Part shown: one piece after another, positions 1,751-12,410 of the stretch | Position numbering within the stretch: position 1 is the first letter of the stretch | How the letters are laid out: every line of letters begins with the position of its first letter | Source of the DNA: Tetramitus jugosus | Taxonomy: Eukaryota; Protista; Heterolobosea | Direction: 5' to 3' | Assembly (NCBI GenBank): GCA_937625935.1 | Contig: OW569345.1 | Span: 62,001-126,000, forward strand | Length of the DNA stretch: 64,000 nt | Translations under genes and position numbers: made by a program | The notes under the pieces: model-generated | The model's database searches: none | Told to the model about the DNA's origin: nothing | What the model saw: only the letters and a program-made list of their open reading frames with translations

Positions 1751-4700
1751 ATGAGTCACTACAACAAGAACTACGCATCAACCAGCTACAACAGCTACAA
1801 CAGCTACAACAGCTACAACAATGAATACAGCTCTGATCCCTTTGGTAATCAATACTTTCACTTTGGTTTCGGTGTTGACACTGGATTGAAGGCAGAGTTG
1901 GGACTGACAGACTTGTCTAGTCCCCTGTACAGCAACGAAAACAAGAGCTCTTCTTATGAAGAATTGGACAAGCAAAAGGGTCCACTCCATGAATTCAAAG
2001 CTAAAGTATCGAGCAAGTCAGAGATGAGTCCCACTCTGGGAAGAGGATTCGATGATTCACCCATTCCAGATCAATCAGTCTTCTCTCCTACCAACTCGAA
2101 CAGCAACAGACGAAGGAATGCCTACTAGGAGTGTGTGTGAACGACTGACCCATCACTCAACCCACACTACTAGGTGTTTTACAGATAGAAGTGACTCTGA
2201 GAGTCTTCAGATTACCTGATTCGACACGTCCATCCATACTGTACATAGAGAAATAAACCATATTCAACCTTCCATCAAAAAACTCCGATCTTTTTGTCTA
2301 TTCTTACATCAGAAATGGGCACTTGTTCACTTGGTTGCAACAATGGTCAAACCAAGCTCTTCAACTTATCGGACATTTGGACATATCTCCGTGGTGCTGG
2401 ATGCTCCACCGCTGTGAAAAACGCCGTCAAGTTTTTTTGACCAACAAGAAAGCAAAAACAAACTACTTTCAGCAATCGTTATTTCAGGACCCAAGAAGAC
2501 ATTTCATGACTATTGAGAATGCAGAAACAGACCAATTTTAACCCAGTGAGTGATTCAAGACTCAACTATTGGAGAGAAGACTTGGATTGCACCAGAACAA
2601 GATCAAGAGGATGAAGACGATAACAACAGTGATGACGATCATGATGAAAATAAGAATGAGTCATCTTCTGCCAGCTCCAACGGTTGCAAATCGTGATAAA
2701 ACCAAGAGAGAAACAAAGAATAGAACTAGCCGGAGTTTCTCAACGGGCACGACGAGTGCAGGGCGCAAATGTTTCTCCAAACATTCGTTTCCAGTGGAGA
2801 CGAGGGCAGTGAAGCATCGGACCGGTCACACAATAGTGTTGATCAGGATGATGATAGCACTGGAGCAACAGTGTCTTCTTCGACGACTCCTACCTTCAAT
2901 GCTACTATTAGTTCCTTGGTCACACGGCGTCCGTCTTCTACTTCTCAAGAACCCTTAGGAAACAGTGACAACAGTGATGATGCATTCTCTGCATCCGCAC
3001 CCATCAATGTCGACAATGTAGATAAGAAGGAGAAGTGTTGCTCCTGTTCCTTCTTCAACATGTTTGTCAACAGTTCACTCCTGATACAACCTATTTCAAG
3101 AGCATGTGCACTCAATTGTTAGAGTATGGCTATCTGTCTGATTCTCGATCTTGGTCACAATTGTCTAAAGTCTGTGTGCAAGGACTTTATGCTTGATGTT
3201 ATTTCAAATTGGCCAGCCTTTTCCGAAGCGGCTCCACAAGGTGAGATTACAGAAGGAGCCGCCTCGAAATCAAAGCTCCGGAGATCGGAATCTGTTGGTT
3301 CCTTCCTCTCTGGTCTCGGAAGAGACATGGAAATGTCAAGAAGAGGAAATCTACTCGTGTCATCAACAGAGCTTCCATTCTTTGATTTCATGTTTTACTC
3401 AACTTCTCGATTCAAGCAAGATTGGGGCAGCAAGGCTAAGCTAGGAAAGGGAGCCATTGGTTCTGTATTTCGGTCACGTCATCGCATCGATGGTCATGAA
3501 TATGCCATCAAGAGAATCAAGTTCTGTTTCCGAAATAAGCTCGAACTTGAACAAACATACGCAAAGGTTATTCGTGAGGTGAAGTTGTTGGCAAGCTTGG
3601 ATCATCCGAATATCGTGCGATACAATAAAGCATGGTTCGAACCTAGTTGGAAAGATCCTGACTATGGCGAGCCAGAAAACAGCGATGACGATGAAGAGGA
3701 TGACTTTGATTCAGAGAAAGTGGATGATTTCGAATCCAACATCAACGATGGAAGCACTGTCAATAGTGGAAGCAGTGGATTTGCTAATATAGGTGTTGAT
3801 GCAAATATCAAGAGGGCCAATGACGATTGTGCGAATAATGTTCAGTTTAGTTTTGATGAAGAGGCTGACCCTGCTTCTCCCTTCACCCCGAGCATGCCGC
3901 TCAATTCAGATAACGTCAAGTTTGAATGTTCAAGTGATGGCGATTCTGTAATTAGTCTTGTTCAACTACCCGAAGAGCCACACCCATACGACAAGTATCA
4001 ATCATCATTTATTGCTCCTTCCCCACAGGATATGAGCTACCTAGAATATGCCATCAAACAGAAGCAACAAGGAACAGCAACCAGACAACCAATAGTTCCT
4101 CACCGCTCCATAACTGAAAAGGTGACTAATCCCCAGCTGTTGTTGACAATTCAGTTCAGCAAGCAGTCAAGAATCTATTGGCCGAAATGTTCAACGAGAA
4201 GAAGAACAAGTTCGAAATGTTTTTATATATTCAATGCAACTGTGTCAACAGAATACGTTGGAGGATTACATGTGGAATCAAAATCGTGTCCAACAATGCG
4301 TTGTAGATTATGGTCAATGCATGAACTTTTTCAAGCAAATTGCCGAGGGTGTTGCCTACATTCACAGCAAGGAGCTTATGCATCGAGATCTCAAGCCAAA
4401 AAATGTATTTATTACCAATGATAACATTTTCAAGATTGGAGACTTTGGCTTGGCTAAATCAGTGAGAGACAACCTTGCTCACACAAAGTTCAACAAACAT
4501 GGCACAGAACATGGTGACAAACAAATTGTTCAACGGTCTCAGAGTCCAATTGGATCAGATTTATCGGAGCACACATGCTTCACCAGAACAATATGCCACA
4601 TCCATGTATGATGATAAGGCAGATGTGTTCACCCAGTCTGGGTGTCATTCTTTTTGAGATGTTGCATCCATTTGCTACAAAATCTGAGCGAGCTCACATA

Positions 4701-5033
4701 TTGACTGGTCTACGGTCAGGCAAGATCCCAGATTCTAAGCAAGAGAAATATCCTGAGGAGATGGAGCTTGTGAAGAGGTGTATCGATTCAGCTCCAATGT
4801 CACGTCCAACAGCGAGAGAAGTCCTCACCATAACAAAGGGCATCCTGTTGCGTAAGCAGAAGAGAAACGTGAATGGACAAAAGTCATACGCGCATCTCGA
4901 CAGCAGTGTGAACATCACTCACATTGCCCAAACGAACGACGAAGTTGTCACTACGAAACCAGTGACCAACGACTTGGATGTTCGAATGTTATTACAACAA
5001 AAGGATGATGAGATTATGCAACTTAGAGCATGA
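1751..5033 (+). pseudogene. HRI/EIF2AK1-like eIF2-alpha kinase, multiply frameshifted and apparently interrupted at its 3' end
   Basis: Motifs LGKGAIGSVF, YAIKRI, REVKLLASLDHPNIVRYNKAWFE, a long acidic insert, LYIQ(M)QLC, HRDLKPKN, KIGDFGLA, ASPEQ, SLGVILFEM and a C-terminal coiled coil are spread over several frames. An HRI-like N-terminal helix motif (LLLFLLQHVCQQ...FKSMCTQLLEYGYL) lies at ~3036-3140 in a frame the ORF track does not list. Confidence 0.8.
1783..1820 (+). repeat. 9-bp tandem repeat (CAGCTACAA)x4, encoding SYN repeats
   Basis: Directly visible in the sequence. Confidence 0.9.
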
Positions 5034-5034
5034 T

Positions 5035-5844
5035 TTATTCAATAAAAACATCAGTATCTTGCAACCGGTCAGTCACAACCAATGGAGGTGGTGCAATCTT
5101 TTCACACAACCTCTGGATCAACGCTCCTTCATAGCTGGTGATGGGCAGTGACGAGATACAGCTTGAGTGGCCCATGTCAAAACATACAAGTTTTTCAGTG
5201 GCCATGTAAACACCATACTGAATTCTACCCAACCTCAGGTAGTTACTCAGCTTGCAGGATGTTTCTGGCACAATGCAAGTGAAAGAAGTGGTGCCGTGTT
5301 CTTCCAAAAACTGCTGTCCCGCGCGAATTTCCCTGATGTCCGTGCAGAGAAGACTCACAGTCTCCTGTGTCTCCACTTCCAACTGCATTTTTGCGTAAGT
5401 AACAAAGTGCACAACCCTGTGGGGATAACGATCAAGTAGTGTGAGGAGCTTGGGACACGCGCTGCAATTGGACTTGAACAATCCATTGTTGTGGGTGCAC
5501 CGTTTCCTAACAACATAATAAAGAAAAGAGGTTAGATACTTCAATCGTTGTATGTCATTCAATACAACCAAACCAAATTTTAAGATATCCACAACATCTT
5601 CAAGATTTTTCCCCGCCAGCGAGCATGATACTCCGCTAAATTCCCTAACGGCGAGACATAGGATGGCAATCTTTCTTTCATTGAAAGACAAGGGTAAGCG
5701 AGGAGTCATTGTAATCACACCCATCGAGTCTGGAGTATCTTCCCTTTCAAATCGAAATGTCTTTCTCGTTCCATCATCCAATTCAACAACAACTGACGTG
5801 AGAGCCAGCGCATTTTTGCGGAGAAATAGGTTCAATTTTTTCAT
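5035..5844 (-). CDS. Orphan element-associated protein (ORF-L, ~269 aa), divergent from the transposase
   Basis: Intact intronless ORF; first ATG at 5844 (MKKLNLFL...). It has a Cys/His cluster (CTH...CSAC) and no recognised domain. Confidence 0.6.
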   Translation of the reverse strand: MKKLNLFLRKNALALTSVVVELDDGTRKTFRFEREDTPDSMGVITMTPRLPLSFNERKIAILCLAVREFSGVSCSLAGKNLEDVVDILKFGLVVLNDIQRLKYLTSFLYYVVRKRCTHNNGLFKSNCSACPKLLTLLDRYPHRVVHFVTYAKMQLEVETQETVSLLCTDIREIRAGQQFLEEHGTTSFTCIVPETSCKLSNYLRLGRIQYGVYMATEKLVCFDMGHSSCISSLPITSYEGALIQRLCEKIAPPPLVVTDRLQDTDVFIE

Positions 5845-5973
5845 TGCACTTGTTTTTTCATCAAGTGCGAGTAGGAAAATCCCACGAATCAGCGATGTGG
5901 GAGTTTTACACAAAGAAATTGTTGTATTCAAACAAATTTATAGCTTGGAAATAGAAGAATCGAGTAACCTACT

Positions 5974-8688
5974 ATGACAATCAACGACCAACTCCTACAG
6001 GAAGGCATTTTTGGTCCTGTCTATTCTACAAATGGTCAAATCTACGATATTACCAGTATCATGACTCAGAGAAGCCAATTTCCTTCGGAAACTAGAGAAT
6101 TTCGGCAGTATGCAAAAAGGTTCTTGCAAGAGATAGACTCATCATGGTCAGTGACAGGTGGAAGATACTACGTTTCATTGCGGGGGGTATTGCGAGTGGC
6201 ATGTAAATGTCGTTTATTCTCAATACTGGATGGATTTGCAGATTATTTTGAATCGAGTCATACTCCTAATGTTGCCACCGTCGCTAGATACTCCTCATTA
6301 GATCCCATTGATATTAGTAACATATTTTCGACAATAGAGACAGTGGGGTCGAGTTCCGGTGTGGGTATCCATAATATATTGCCCAATCGCCGATCAGAAA
6401 CTTCTAGATTAAATCGACTTAGAAGAAAAATTGTTGTCGCTCTTGTGGATATTTGCAAGCCCTATCAATCCCGAAACATGCAAGAATATCCTATTCAACA
6501 GGCTATTCTGGATATATTAATAATGTTCCTCAGTGGAAATACAGCATCTATCAAATCAAATGATTTAGTGACTGGTATTATCAATGCCCTGTGTGCTAAT
6601 TATGAAAACAGAGTCCTATCTATTCGGTTGAAGGAGATCGACAATCAATTGAAAACAATGAAAAAAGAAGCAGCATTCATGAAAAGCTATTGCAATCTCA
6701 CAGACATGCAATGGTTAAAATTGAGGTACTTCTTTGTCAAAAAGAGGAAGAATATGATATTTGTCACACCCTTCCCAACGACGATATGCGGTGCAAATTT
6801 ATACTGTCCATTTGTTAGCTTGAAGAAGGTGAAAGAGGGGGAGAATCATATCAAAGAGACTCTTTACAAACGAATGCCGCTTGGACAGATGCCGACAAAG
6901 GGCCGTGGCTTTGTTTTTACGCTAGATGATTTCACGAAATTAATCAACAAGTTCGAACAATGGAAAGATTCCAAAGTTCCTGTGGAAACAAAAAGTCATA
7001 CATGTCAACAGTTCGAAGAAGTCATGCGCTTTCATGATATTATCCCAAGCATGCTATCGAATAGCTTTTCGATGAACGAGGACGGAACCATTGCCATTAA
7101 GTTGAAGAAGTATTCTTGGCTTTTCAGCTGCGATACAAAACGAACGATGCCGTTTTCATCAAAGGAATTCCGAAAGGATAAAACTTTGGCTTGCTTGTTC
7201 CCACTATTTCTTGGAAACGCAAGACCCTCCTTTTATATGTTCACGATTATTGCATACATGGAATTAACAGAAACCCAAAATAACATGCAGTGGTTGAATC
7301 GATACTTGTTCGAAAACTACTTTGATGCGTTCAAGAAATACTATTTGTTGGTACAACGATGTGATGGAACTCGCGAACTAGTGTTGTTCGATCTGTTCTT
7401 ATGTTCAGATTACAAAGAACTGGCAGCGTTCTTTGGGGAGCTCACGAAATCATGTCTTGGGTGTGAACATGATTTGGACAATAATCTTATTGGTCGCATC
7501 AAAACTCTCAATGACTACCCTTCCTCAGCATCTAAAACGTATGGACCAGATCGGGTAGTCTTTGACATAACACATTGTTGCTCAGCAATAGGGAAAAGCT
7601 TGCGAGATCAGATTGTACATGATGCGATAGCAACAGACAAGTACCAATTTGTTCAACGTTTAAGGGACACTCCAGTATATCAGCAATACCTGCTAACTGG
7701 AGATGCTTATAGTTGCGAGATCGAAGATTATCAGTCATTTTTCCGGATATGCGAGGAGTATAACTACTCGTACAGTGTGTCTAACATTTTTGAGTCGGCA
7801 AATATCTTGTGTTCATTATTGAGTGAACGTACTTCAACTGTACTGCCAACAGTGTTTCCAACCCTCATGATGGTTCAACAACTGCTCGATAGATTAGGCA
7901 TTAACTTCGATGTTTTGTCTGAAAAAACAGCGACAAAGAGAATCATGACTCCATGCTACGCTGCTTCCTTAGTTCTGTTGATATGGCCAAAAATTGAATC
8001 AATGATTAAGAGTAATGATTGTGTTTCAAAACTGGCTATGCGCAAATGGATAGAAGCAATGAAAAGTCATTGCCCAACTCAAGATCAAGTTTCAAAAGTG
8101 AAGTACTGGGCTTCAGTTGCATTTGATGATTGGTCTTTCTTCAAAAAGAGAACATATCGTATGTTATCCAAGCATATCACAAATACTTTCATCGATGGTG
8201 TCAATAGCGGGTTGTTGCCATGGAAAATGAATACAGAAGGAATAGAACGTCTTAACTTTATGACGAGTAATACCAAAACAAATCGCCGCACTCTTGACGA
8301 TACAACGTTAGCTCCCTTTTTGAACGGTACAGAAGAATTTCAAGATTTGGTATTGGATGAAGACAATGAAATATCGGATAATCATCTGGGACCACATTAC
8401 CTACTCCAGGTGTTGTCTAAATTTGATGTCCGATGTGAAGCACACAAGAACTACGATAGAACTCATAGTGAGTCTCTTACAACGACAAGAGTCAAGAGGC
8501 TTAGTCAGAGATTGGATAAGAATAATGTATTACAGTGGTCGCTGTTTGATCAGGGTATAGTTGAACAACTAAATTCTCAAGTTTCTAATCTCCGACATGG
8601 CATTAGACCAATTCGAGATGAACAGATGGAGGATACTTATCAGGTTGAATCAGATAGAGCTGACCTTGTCGAGAATAGTTGGGCATAG
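5974..8688 (+). CDS. RAG1/Transib/Chapaev-like DDE transposase (904 aa)
   Basis: Ordered motifs: AAFMKSYCNLTDMQWLKLR (aa 233-251), FSCD387, LTE433TQNNM, FLCSD479YKELAAFFG..C494xxC497, D531ITH534, H734, NTEGIE758RLN. These match mouse RAG1 D600, E662, D708, C727/C730, H795, H942 and E962 in order and context. Confidence 0.8.
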   Translation: MTINDQLLQEGIFGPVYSTNGQIYDITSIMTQRSQFPSETREFRQYAKRFLQEIDSSWSVTGGRYYVSLRGVLRVACKCRLFSILDGFADYFESSHTPNVATVARYSSLDPIDISNIFSTIETVGSSSGVGIHNILPNRRSETSRLNRLRRKIVVALVDICKPYQSRNMQEYPIQQAILDILIMFLSGNTASIKSNDLVTGIINALCANYENRVLSIRLKEIDNQLKTMKKEAAFMKSYCNLTDMQWLKLRYFFVKKRKNMIFVTPFPTTICGANLYCPFVSLKKVKEGENHIKETLYKRMPLGQMPTKGRGFVFTLDDFTKLINKFEQWKDSKVPVETKSHTCQQFEEVMRFHDIIPSMLSNSFSMNEDGTIAIKLKKYSWLFSCDTKRTMPFSSKEFRKDKTLACLFPLFLGNARPSFYMFTIIAYMELTETQNNMQWLNRYLFENYFDAFKKYYLLVQRCDGTRELVLFDLFLCSDYKELAAFFGELTKSCLGCEHDLDNNLIGRIKTLNDYPSSASKTYGPDRVVFDITHCCSAIGKSLRDQIVHDAIATDKYQFVQRLRDTPVYQQYLLTGDAYSCEIEDYQSFFRICEEYNYSYSVSNIFESANILCSLLSERTSTVLPTVFPTLMMVQQLLDRLGINFDVLSEKTATKRIMTPCYAASLVLLIWPKIESMIKSNDCVSKLAMRKWIEAMKSHCPTQDQVSKVKYWASVAFDDWSFFKKRTYRMLSKHITNTFIDGVNSGLLPWKMNTEGIERLNFMTSNTKTNRRTLDDTTLAPFLNGTEEFQDLVLDEDNEISDNHLGPHYLLQVLSKFDVRCEAHKNYDRTHSESLTTTRVKRLSQRLDKNNVLQWSLFDQGIVEQLNSQVSNLRHGIRPIRDEQMEDTYQVESDRADLVENSWA

Positions 8689-8693
8689 TTAAT

Positions 8694-9440
8694 TTATTTT
8701 TTGTATTGTTTTCTCGTGTTTTTTAAGCTAATGCTTTCACCAGCCTTGATGCTACAGTAATTAAGTATTGGTCGTCCATGGCAATCCTTAATGAAGAGCC
8801 GAAACTTCAACCGCAATCCCAAATCTCCATTCATACCATTGTGAAAATAAATATATAGTGGAGCACGGGAAGTACAATTGGTTCCATCCTTCCAGGTGCG
8901 CAGAGGGTAATTCTGTCCAAAACAAGAGCGAAACATTTGATAGTTGGAGATAACTCTCTGTCGTTCAATGTCCGATCGAACTATTTTCCTTTGTAAAATA
9001 GCTCGAGGCAAATGTCCAAACAAGTGATCAAACACTTGCTTCGTCATCGGTACAGTGCTAGTGGTGACAAAGTCGTCATAGGGATGAGCTTTCCTCATTG
9101 TGGATATCATTTGAATGATCGTTGTTCGCAATTGAAATTTGAGTTCAAAAGCCAAAAATTCATCCACCTTTGGAATAGGATTTCGTTCAATAATTAACTC
9201 CTTTTGGTGTGTTCGCAAGCGAACGACAGCATCTTCGAAACTTGCTTGCACCAGGTCTCTGAAGAAACTGTCTCTTTCGTCGTTGGTGTTCAAATCATAG
9301 TTCCTTTCAGTCATCTGCTTGTATTTTTCATAAACACTGATGATGGAGACATCGTGACTTTCCCACTGCATTTGCTGGTTTTCACAAAGAGGAAAGCGCG
9401 TCATCAACGTTCCAATACTGGGATCAAGCTCGTGTAACAT
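8694..9440 (-). CDS. Orphan element-associated protein (ORF-R, 248 aa), convergent with the transposase
   Basis: Intact intronless ORF whose stop lies 5 nt from the transposase stop; basic C-terminus; no recognised domain. Confidence 0.6.
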   Translation of the reverse strand: MLHELDPSIGTLMTRFPLCENQQMQWESHDVSIISVYEKYKQMTERNYDLNTNDERDSFFRDLVQASFEDAVVRLRTHQKELIIERNPIPKVDEFLAFELKFQLRTTIIQMISTMRKAHPYDDFVTTSTVPMTKQVFDHLFGHLPRAILQRKIVRSDIERQRVISNYQMFRSCFGQNYPLRTWKDGTNCTSRAPLYIYFHNGMNGDLGLRLKFRLFIKDCHGRPILNYCSIKAGESISLKNTRKQYKK

Positions 9441-9571
9441 AGTTGTGTTCTTTTACAGCTCCACCTCTCCAATCAAAGCCATTCATGTTGTGTCGTTGTT
9501 TTGCTTGGATTCCTTTATTTTTGAAAGAGGGACCCTCTATTTTTCGAATGCTGCACGGACTTTCAAAATGA

Positions 9572-9643
9572 ATTGAAGAGAGAAGACACTACAAGATGTT
9601 GATGTCTCTTCCGTCCGAAGAGTCAACACTTCCATCTACCTGA
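9572..9643 (+). pseudogene. Probable displaced 3' tail of the eIF2-alpha kinase
   Basis: Reads IEERRHYKMLMSLPSEESTLPST*, which continues the coiled coil ...QQKDDEIMQLRA in frame if the island and one ATGA are removed. Confidence 0.45.
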
Positions 9644-9761
9644 TCTGCATGGGCTAGGCTGACTGGCGCTTCAGTTGAGGAACTTCCAGATCAAAAAAAC
9701 GAAAAAAAGCTTAGCGTCGAAAACACAACCAAACATCCAATAAGAAAAAGTATTAAAGCAA

Positions 9762-12410
9762 ATGAACAACAACAATAACATTTCTCAGATCAATCCCATG
9801 TTCATTCCACACAGTACTCAACACGAATCCATGTTCATTGGTCGTCTGTTGAGTGCCCACAAGATGATTTGTCAATACAGTGATCCTCTGTTGCAAGCAA
9901 GAGCCCTTTCTGTGATCCCAGAGGACAAGCTACGGTACCAAGCCCAGTTAAAGTATGAACAAGAAAATCGTCAACCACAAGATTCCATTGCACAGCATGA
10001 CATGGATCACTATGTCATTAAAGAGCTGCTCCACTGGTTCAAATCAGAGTTTTTCAAGTGGGTAGATGCTCCTCCGTGTGATCACTGTGGTCACTCACAG
10101 ACAAAGGCCATTGGTCGCAGTGGGCCCAACACTGCTCAGGAGAGAGAAGGCCTGGCAAGTGTCGTTGAAGTCTATCAGTGCTCTTCGTGCCAACAAATGA
10201 CTCGTTTTCCTAGATACAATCACGCGAGTAGGTTGTTGGAGACGAGAAGGGGTCGTTGTGGCGAATGGGCACAATGTTTTACACTCATGTGCATTGCAAT
10301 GGGATACAAGGCTCGTTTTGTGAACGATTGGACAGATCATGTGTGGACAGAGGTGTTTATTGAACGGAGATGGCAACACGCCGATAGTTGTGAAGCGACG
10401 TTGGATGCGAGTCAAATGTATGAATCTGGTTGGGGCAAGAAGCTGAACATGATTGTGGCAGCGGGTTTTGACGAGTTGGTCGATGTGACTCGAAGATATA
10501 CGAAACAATTCTATACGGAGGAGTTTCAAATGAGAAGAAGACAACTGGGAGTCTCAGAAGACTTTGTTGCGCAGTGCTTGACCAATATGAATTATCAGTT
10601 GCAGTTTGTAATGACGCCGCAGAAGATTCAAGAGCTGAATTTCATGCAGACGCAAGAGCAGGAAGAGTTGAAGCAGACGCAACGAGATGCAATGGATTCG
10701 ATCAAGGTGGAAGAATTGAGAGGTAGACAATCTGGTTCAAAGCAGTGGGTAGAGAGCAGAGGAGAAGGTGGTAGTTCATCCACGGAGAAGAAATCCATGT
10801 GCATTACTCCACCCATAGGCGTCGATATCAAGCAATTAGATTCATGGAGCCGCGATCACCCCAATCTATTCCAAAGCGAGAGTTCAAGCTTTTCATTCCT
10901 AGCATCGGCAAGACAGTTTAGAGAGGGTGATGAACCATGTGCACGATTAACTCCCAACCAGACATCACAAGTCGGAGCAGTTTGGTATCAGAAAAAACTG
11001 GACATATCTCAACTGGGATCACTCTACATATCTTTCACATTCCGAACAGTGGGAAGAGGAGCTGATGGATTTGCATTTGTGTTGCAAGCAGATTCATCGA
11101 GTGCCATTGGTGAGGGTGGATGTGGCATAGGATACCAAGGTATCAAGAATAGTGTGGCAATAGAGTTTGATACCTATTGTACGTACGATCGATGCAATGA
11201 CCCCGATGGCAATCACATATCGATTCAGACGAGATATTCAGAACCCAATTCTGCTCATCATCACTACTCTCTTTCTTGTACCAAGAATTTGGAATCGGAC
11301 TATGGAGTCATGTTGAATGATGGCAAAATTCACCATGCTAAGCTTGTGTATGATCATTCAACAAAGAAAATGCATGTCTCAGTAGATGGCCTTTGGATTC
11401 TCAGAGATGTTCAGATCGATTTGAACAAGGTATTGAATCAGAGTAGTTGCTGGATGGGTTTTACTGCTGCAACAGGTGGATTATGTCAGGCTCATGATAT
11501 TCTAACATTTACCACATGCTCGACTACCACAGTTGGTGGTGAATCGAGTCGCAACCGTACTGAATATGTGCTCTATAGTGCAGGCAACGTTGCAGGAATT
11601 AAGAAAAAGTTAATCGAGTTCAATTCATCATTGCTTGATCCTTCCACAGCCTTGAGTGGGGTTGAACTGAGCACCTTGACAAATGTCATGAACTGTCTTG
11701 ATAGTGTATCTCACTCCTTCAAGTGGAACGATGAACTACATGGTATTGTATTCAAGATTTTGGATACATGGCCTCAAGCAAAGCACTTCCCAGTGCTAGA
11801 CTTGATTCGATTGTGTTGCCATAGATATTCCACTGCAATGTGTGATTACTATTCTCAGCGGAACTCTTTCTGTTCAAAGTTACTATTGGACAAAAAAGCG
11901 CAGCCTGCTGCAAACCGAATGATTCTCTATCGTTTGCTTTGCAATGCACTGGGTTCAACAGAATTAAGACTCAAAGTAATCATGCCTGAAATTCGTGTGA
12001 TCACTGACAATGTTTTGGAGGAGAGTTCTTCTTGGTCTCTCTCTGCAAGTGACAAAGCACCAGTTCGAGAGCCATTCTTTGCCTTTGTTCATAATCTTGT
12101 ATTGATGCTTAGTGAAATCAAGGAACATGAAGAAGATGTCTTGGTTCAAGTACTAAATGCGGAGATATCCTTGTTGAAGCAAGAGCTGGGGTCTAGTGAT
12201 TTGGAAGACAAGAATATCCATCTGATGCTCAGATCTCTCGTACATTCCCTCCAGATACGACCTGACGAAGAGGCAGAAGAAGGTTCCGTCATCAAGTTCA
12301 TTTTGATTTCAATGGACATTCTGGAGTTACTTACTGCTATAGCTTCCAATCCGAAGATCTCATCTACCACGCAACAGTTTGCGCAAAAGGTGTCAGATCT
12401 TTTACAGTAA
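9762..12410 (+). CDS. NGLY1: Peptide:N-glycanase with an L-type lectin domain and a C-terminal PUL domain
   Basis: LLHWFKSEFFKWVD, two CxxC zinc motifs, RFPRYN, catalytic triad RGRC166GEWA / DH193VWTE / AD208SCE and YESGWGKKL. Lectin motifs GADGFAF, VAIEFDT, GFTAATGG; PUL motif FPVLDLIRL. Confidence 0.9.
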   Translation: MNNNNNISQINPMFIPHSTQHESMFIGRLLSAHKMICQYSDPLLQARALSVIPEDKLRYQAQLKYEQENRQPQDSIAQHDMDHYVIKELLHWFKSEFFKWVDAPPCDHCGHSQTKAIGRSGPNTAQEREGLASVVEVYQCSSCQQMTRFPRYNHASRLLETRRGRCGEWAQCFTLMCIAMGYKARFVNDWTDHVWTEVFIERRWQHADSCEATLDASQMYESGWGKKLNMIVAAGFDELVDVTRRYTKQFYTEEFQMRRRQLGVSEDFVAQCLTNMNYQLQFVMTPQKIQELNFMQTQEQEELKQTQRDAMDSIKVEELRGRQSGSKQWVESRGEGGSSSTEKKSMCITPPIGVDIKQLDSWSRDHPNLFQSESSSFSFLASARQFREGDEPCARLTPNQTSQVGAVWYQKKLDISQLGSLYISFTFRTVGRGADGFAFVLQADSSSAIGEGGCGIGYQGIKNSVAIEFDTYCTYDRCNDPDGNHISIQTRYSEPNSAHHHYSLSCTKNLESDYGVMLNDGKIHHAKLVYDHSTKKMHVSVDGLWILRDVQIDLNKVLNQSSCWMGFTAATGGLCQAHDILTFTTCSTTTVGGESSRNRTEYVLYSAGNVAGIKKKLIEFNSSLLDPSTALSGVELSTLTNVMNCLDSVSHSFKWNDELHGIVFKILDTWPQAKHFPVLDLIRLCCHRYSTAMCDYYSQRNSFCSKLLLDKKAQPAANRMILYRLLCNALGSTELRLKVIMPEIRVITDNVLEESSSWSLSASDKAPVREPFFAFVHNLVLMLSEIKEHEEDVLVQVLNAEISLLKQELGSSDLEDKNIHLMLRSLVHSLQIRPDEEAEEGSVIKFILISMDILELLTAIASNPKISSTTQQFAQKVSDLLQ

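Follow-up and report, generated by a model that had tools for sequence, protein, structure and literature searches.

We consider it reasonably likely that the open reading frame at positions 5974-8688 (+) of the 64,000-nucleotide stretch of Tetramitus jugosus DNA analysed here (the window, part of contig C2) codes for a cut-and-paste transposase of the CMCT clade (EnSpm/Mirage/Chapaev/Transib/RAG1), that this enzyme represents a divergent heterolobosean lineage nearest Transib/RAG1, and that the frame lies at the centre of a transposon of three genes, ORF-L, the transposase and ORF-R. As the initial annotation had claimed, the frame is single and open, uninterrupted from ATG to TAG, and gives a protein of 904 aa.

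Conserved residues and probable class of the transposase

We checked D387, E433, D479, C494/C497, D531, H534, R729, H734 and E758 in the translation. Every motif residue named by the initial annotation was found at its position, and conservation makes a chance arrangement unlikely. D387 (7132..7134, +) and D479 (7408..7410, +), the putative first and second catalytic Asp, each stand at the end of a predicted strand, D479 within a DYK motif, and E758 (8245..8247, +) would be the catalytic Glu on the final helix. A C(2)C motif is formed by C494-x2-C497 (7453..7464, +), and D531-x2-H534 (7564..7575, +) is the presumed counterpart of RAG1 DALH795. Order and spacing suggest that D387, E433 (or E430), D479 and E758, all of them conserved, are equivalent to the DEDE tetrad of RAG1/RAG1L; the 46 residues from E433 to D479 equal the E662-D708 interval of RAG1, in what we take to be its numbering. 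A DDBD-like helix sits ahead of the core.

An exhaustive phmmer search of 1.84 billion representatives with the 904-aa query returned six matches, namely pieces of a 50%-identical copy, short fragments and P0002, a 1439-aa protein with 24% identity over about 700 aa and a C-terminal Ulp1 domain, which is a common transposon cargo. The 50%-identical relative, present in assembly GCA_037189345.1, is frameshifted, and a further distant relative, P0007, was reached via P0002. When the query and these three relatives were aligned (four sequences from three assemblies, with identities from 50% down to 24%), we observed no change at D387, E430, E433, D479, C494, C497, D531 or H534. The two distant relatives, P0002 and P0007, also retain H734 and the E758-R pair; the degenerate piece P0003 keeps the E758 equivalent, but has an Arg at the H734 position.

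Three of the four zinc ligands of ZnB are present (C494, C497 and H734), and the H(3-4)H motif preceding the catalytic Glu is incomplete, with H734 alone. The first His of the HxxxxH pair had been read as an Arg, and R729 is indeed found there. Since this position is occupied by Arg in the query and by Leu or Val in P0002/P0007, the missing first zinc His characterises the lineage as a whole and is not damage to one particular copy. The Bro-N/KilA likeness suggested for the N-terminus found no confirmation: Pfam and PHROGs gave no match, and a five-sequence profile against the PDB gave histone H4 alone (E 0.05). The VP30 and histone H4 profile matches (E 0.05-1) were taken as chance.

Other candidates were observed in the T. 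jugosus genome. Open frames of 1015 and 1123 aa, weakly similar to P0007, occur at C9:302399-302935 and C37:146940-147260, respectively, and are probably other intact RAG1-like families. Degenerate Ulp1/PHD members of the P0002/P0007 sister family, along with more ORF-R homologues, were seen at C47:204-216 kb, C11:225-227 kb, C40:347 kb, C48:93 kb and C24:415 kb.

Searches of Pfam, PHROGs and the PDB, by sequence and by profile, gave no match for the transposase, ORF-L or ORF-R. The Pfam RAG1 family (PF12940) did not match the transposase, in searches one of which ran without a positive control, and neither did Pfam Transposase_21; word-index protein searches with the transposase query and scans of viral and metagenome contigs for it were blank. 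Three identity-independent searches (ESM, Foldseek and a structure atlas) nevertheless converge on one transposase clade. With residues 225-790, the ESM feature search placed three RAG1 clusters on top (0.93); of the ten best matches that carry a family, nine have a family or clan in common; according to the tool, a chance first match of 0.9 or more occurs in 4-10% of cases. The number of shared features (151-156) falls short of the 170 usual for matches within a family, which fits a distant relative or chance.

Residues 222-780 were modelled by AlphaFold2 from a seven-row alignment, with a mean pLDDT of 45 and a pTM of 0.28 (a single-sequence fold reached pLDDT 33). The model contains, in order, a strand with D387, two strands, a helix, a strand with D479, an extended helical insert and the final helix, which bears E758; this predicted order would be that of a transposase with an RNase H-like fold and an insertion domain, in a model whose RNase H part has pLDDT <50. 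When this low-confidence model was compared with the PDB by Foldseek, ranks 1-20 were all HzTransib or RAG1 chains, yet even the best match, HzTransib, has E 0.0065, none reaches E 0.001, and the TM values are 0.16-0.18. Rows 1-5 of the structure atlas are CACTA Tnp2 (Transposase_21), Plavaka and DUF1258, and VIA-align on the model returned generic helical bundles alone.

Taken together, these results indicate that the protein almost certainly belongs to the wider CMCT/RAG1 group, and that it is probably a DDE enzyme of the RAG1/Transib group (CMCT clade) with nearest kinship to Transib/RAG1, which we hold with good confidence. The claim of a RAG1/Transib/Chapaev-like enzyme thus stands for a DDE transposase of the RAG1/Transib/CMC group, on the strength of ESM, Foldseek, the atlas, residue conservation and multicopy behaviour; a place in Chapaev or specifically in the RAG1 lineage is not established, the atlas having put CACTA Tnp2 and Plavaka first. 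That the protein is not a DDE enzyme, its motifs being coincidental and the protein itself the cargo of another kind of mobile element, would agree with the blank sequence-level searches, the low-confidence model and the lack of element ends. We hold this to be highly improbable, as three different searches agree on one transposase clade and the invariant residues correspond, in identity and in order, to those that a DDE enzyme should have.

The place of the enzyme within the clade was also considered. ESTA transposases match RAG1 by HHpred too (PMC12730594), and the ranking of RAG1/Transib first might be an effect of library content, with the CMCT transposase of the window being nearer EnSpm/Mirage/Chapaev/Plavaka/ESTA or forming a separate lineage. 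The first five atlas rows (Transposase_21, Plavaka and DUF1258) speak for such a placement, as does the capture of a host gene described below. Indeed, host gene capture is typical of CACTA elements, and Transib and RAG1 are to our knowledge the only CMCT members with solved structures, so that Foldseek against the PDB cannot discriminate within CMCT. We still find this placement unlikely: the ESM search covers CACTA clusters, yet RAG1 comes first; Transposase_21 gave no Pfam match; the E433-D479 spacing (46) is presumably that of RAG1, and the DDBD-like helix lies ahead of the core.

The element, its ends and its passengers

The genome searched comprises 26,350,207 bases in 56 pieces. The unit common to the window and to a broken copy on C6 covers 2331..9585, with 96.6-97.4% identity, which sets a minimum extent of 7.25 kb. 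This second copy, the two partner ORFs and the captured kinase fragment described below do not figure in the initial annotation. The C6 copy is near-full, has three frame-breaking deletions, and lies 9-16 kb from a contig end amid other transposon debris. Older fragments were found on C24, C35, C37, C43, C25 and C30, and also at the opposite end of C6. These dispersed copies, the near-full one included, show 76-97% DNA identity, and the window copy is the sole intact member of its family in the assembly. Within the left-end region (2331..2551), the stretch 2405-2537 is also present next to an old transposase remnant on C24, where no kinase piece occurs; this stretch is therefore part of the ancestral element, and the kinase piece lies inside the element.

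At the ends shared by the C2 and C6 copies we found no CAC-type TIRs and no target duplication (5-bp TSD), and no CA..TG termini or 2-5-bp TSD either; the termini are possibly lost, so that these results test the copy and not the family. A weak candidate inverted repeat pairs 2357..2369 (+) with 9568..9580 (-) at 11 of 13 positions; it is subterminal, not CAC-type, and occurs in both copies, with a chance probability of about 1%. We did not retain it as a proven TIR, as the shared sequence extends 26 and 5 bases past its arms and no other pairs were found in the genome. Immediately to the right of the C6 copy lies a transposase fragment (L037:750-1300) that we take, from its motifs, to be of EnSpm/CACTA type, and the right boundary of this copy may therefore be secondary. 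A 534-aa kinase-like ORF reads out of the left end of the same fragment.

A CACTA-like word at 9587 overlaps a ribosomal-protein fragment and was taken as coincidence. This 63-bp fragment (9591..9653, +) is 87% identical to a C15 gene, presumably that of ribosomal protein S5 by its translation; it lies just beyond the C6-shared part, and its membership in the element is uncertain. The start of a Peptide:N-glycanase-like gene (PNGase; 9762-12410, +) follows just downstream of it; this gene has a transglutaminase core as well as legume-type lectin and PUL domains, and its heterozygous sites amount to about 2% in run X3.

CMCT transposases have the C(2)C and H(3-4)H motifs in common, and their elements mostly have CA..TG ends and 2-5-bp TSDs (PMC12730594). 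In our case the C(2)C motif is present, the H(3-4)H motif is incomplete, and CA..TG ends and a TSD did not appear as tested; we therefore liken the enzyme to Transib/RAG1 in its working and file it in neither. For want of CAC-type inverted repeats and of a target duplication, and given the lineage-wide loss of the first His, the element is not filed as Transib, Chapaev or RAGL. The window copy probably has no usable ends now and is immobile or nearly so.

Several rearrangements were noticed in the copies. A 57-bp inversion is found in the ORF-L of C6 (L021:6232-6288) and an inverted 1.3-kb block in C24 (L022:7550-8376); lying inside dead copies, these could be scars of hairpin-type breaks. At window position 9047, one contig of run X3 joins ORF-R sequence to TTTGGG repeats, probably a telomere added on a broken copy.

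The element carries a captured kinase copy (2599..5030, +), frameshifted and 96% identical to the 3' two thirds of a C22 gene, minus its last 9 codons. The parent on C22 is an intact protein kinase gene of 1233 aa, which we take to be eIF2-alpha-kinase-like by its split kinase domain. Ahead of the kinase piece in the element, 56 bp (2552..2607, +) are 90% identical to a C34 coding stretch and are regarded as captured filler. Since seven indels relative to C22 are common to the C2 and C6 kinase pieces, the capture predates the C2/C6 duplication. We rejected the idea that the element had split a resident kinase gene: the parent is intact on C22, the last kinase codons are absent at the right end, and the C6 copy has this broken piece as well. 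Both the kinase and the C34 pieces would have entered via template switching while a break within the element was under repair, a capture that may be likened to that of Pack-type elements.

The partner genes are both orphans on the minus strand. ORF-L (5035..5931, 298 aa) is divergent from the transposase, and ORF-R (8694..9440, 248 aa) is convergent with it, at a distance of 5 bp. Pieces of each adjoin old transposase remnants elsewhere in the genome, and the three-gene layout is therefore ancestral. A weak ORF-L homologue (21%, E 2.5e-5) was noticed at C50:121008-121409, in a 311-aa open frame.

ORF-R matches C47:215397-215942 (31%, E 3e-10), where the match faces, in convergent orientation, a degenerate P0002/P0007-family transposase. 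About 110 bases on, on the same strand, lies an 83% match to the convergent neighbour of P0002 on the P0002 contig, a gene ending in two PHD fingers. The sister family's partner would probably consist of an ORF-R-like domain, a linker and PHD-PHD, its continuity being deduced from coordinates on a frameshifted C47 copy, and ORF-R resembles the N-terminal part of this double-PHD partner, to which it would be homologous. In ORF-R itself, neither kelch nor PHD was detected by Pfam/profile search. RAG2 and RAG2L are made of kelch and PHD, one of them (PflRAG2L-A) with a double PHD (PMC10462144). As ORF-R, which gives no kelch signal, falls short of the length of a six-bladed propeller, analogy with RAG2 is likelier than homology. 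We propose that ORF-R is probably an accessory partner, from which the chromatin-reading PHD tail seen in the sister family's partner would have been lost.

A more far-reaching reading, which we put forward tentatively and think rather improbable, is that these RAG1-like transposons belong to a lineage of their own in Discoba, in which the convergent partner is not a kelch protein (it has the ORF-R domain, and a double PHD or none) and the zinc site has three ligands. Such a lineage would either have invented the two-component design of RAG1-RAG2 independently or represent a very early form of it, and would move without canonical TIRs or TSD and carry host gene fragments.

Selection, expression and a possible host role

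Comparison of the C2 and C6 transposases gave pS 0.061 and pN 0.012, a ratio of 0.19. When changes were polarised with the old copies, the C2 branch showed 13 synonymous and 6 replacement changes (p 1e-5 vs neutrality), and the C6 branch 10 and about 11, respectively. On the path to C2, the kinase piece (2.4 kb) acquired eight frameshifts and the transposase zero, where about nine would be expected at the kinase rate (P 1e-4, equal exposure time assumed). By these sequence comparisons the transposase is under purifying selection, which fits either recent transposition or domestication. Synonymous divergence is higher in the transposase (5.7%) than in the kinase piece (1.2%; Fisher p 6e-9), pointing to a mosaic or allelic history.

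The unlabelled run X8 behaves like RNA, as shown by depths of 15,272 for the ribosomal-protein fragment, 387 for the host kinase and 75 for PNGase. ORF-L had a depth of 82 and ORF-R of 11 in this run, whose contigs show presence only, in one condition; no contig of the transposase was found in it, the one RNA-like run. The ORF-L contig corresponds to a third allele, neither that of the window nor that of C6, and ORF-L is probably transcribed. Close copies exist in groundwater and soil metagenomes.

The same class of enzyme could be domesticated or on the way to it, fixed at one locus without ends and serving its host in some cellular role, with the C6 copy as a subtelomeric segmental duplicate and not a product of transposition. 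The window copy is the only intact one and has no TIR or TSD, the C2 branch is under strong purifying selection, the C6 copy is close to a contig end among transposon debris, and near-identical pieces occur in an unrelated soil sample, all of which would suit such a role. However, selection is equally expected if the lineage transposed until recently, the RNA-like run shows ORF-L but not the transposase, old dispersed copies are many, the relative in GCA_037189345.1 is frameshifted, and both flanking ORFs are intact too, as in a young element. We judge domestication to be unlikely.

Proposed mechanism and comparison with known systems

For this transposon, what is known of the family suggests that a transposase dimer would bind the element ends through the 230-300 region, and that D387/D479/E758, helped by E433 and H534, would bind Mg2+. 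One strand would be nicked, a hairpin closed on the flanking DNA, and the free ends joined to the target. Transib and RAG act in this manner, nicking one strand, forming the hairpin on flanking DNA and joining the freed ends to the target (PMC5499845), and H795 of RAG1 is an active-site residue (PMC7204232).

The protist Aureococcus has a published active RAGL transposon, and pieces of RAG1L/Transib are on record from further non-animals (PMC9435367). RAG1-like transposons in protists being already published, the surprise is lower than the initial annotation implied. No heterolobosean case was found in the literature search or in the supplementary text that it covered. The present element extends RAG1/Transib-like transposases to Discoba, far from animals and from the stramenopile with the described protist RAGL. 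In addition, an intact and selected enzyme at the limit of detection provides an outgroup for ancestral RAG1 features, namely the zinc site, the partner-binding insert and the recognition of ends; the relation of ORF-R to the double PHD makes the repeated origin of a RAG1-like enzyme with a convergent chromatin-reading partner testable; and the captured kinase piece indicates that this transposon class can shuffle host genes.

With the CMC group (EnSpm/CACTA, Mirage, Chapaev), Plavaka and ESTA, the element shares the C(2)C motif, weak structural neighbours and host gene capture; it differs in having no Pfam match, an incomplete H(3-4)H motif, and no CA..TG termini or 2-5-bp TSD that we could find. 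Transib (HzTransib, PDB 6PQY; Subgroup I Transibs, PMC9435367) provides the best Foldseek match and has the same D-E-D...E order, CxxC, DxxH and helical insert between the second Asp and the Glu. Unlike Transib, with about 460-500 aa, the amoeba protein has 904 aa, including a conserved 100-aa N-terminal domain of no recognised fold; its H534-H734 span is 200 aa and its first zinc His is absent, and the element has two extra ORFs, with no CAC-type TIRs or 5-bp TSD found.

The sister family P0002/P0007 (an ENA metagenome contig, GCA_037189345.1 and the degenerate copy on C47 of T. jugosus) is similar at 23-25% identity over about 700 aa, N-terminus included, with the same single His and a convergent partner gene bearing an ORF-R-like region, whereas its transposase is fused to a Ulp1 protease domain and its partner has two PHD fingers.

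Compared with RAG1/RAG1L (RAGL, ProtoRAG, Aureococcus AanRAGL), the amoeba protein lacks the RING, the Cys-rich N-terminal motifs and the CCGHC tail, and has three of the four ZnB zinc ligands that characterise RAG1/RAG1L (PMC10462144); the partner has no detectable kelch and, here, no PHD, and the element has a third, divergent ORF and no RSS-like ends. Nevertheless, RAG1 supplies the top ESM clusters, a DEDE-like tetrad and a counterpart of H795 are present, and the second gene is convergent as in RAGL/ProtoRAG, the sister family's partner having a double PHD like that of PflRAG2L-A (PMC10462144).
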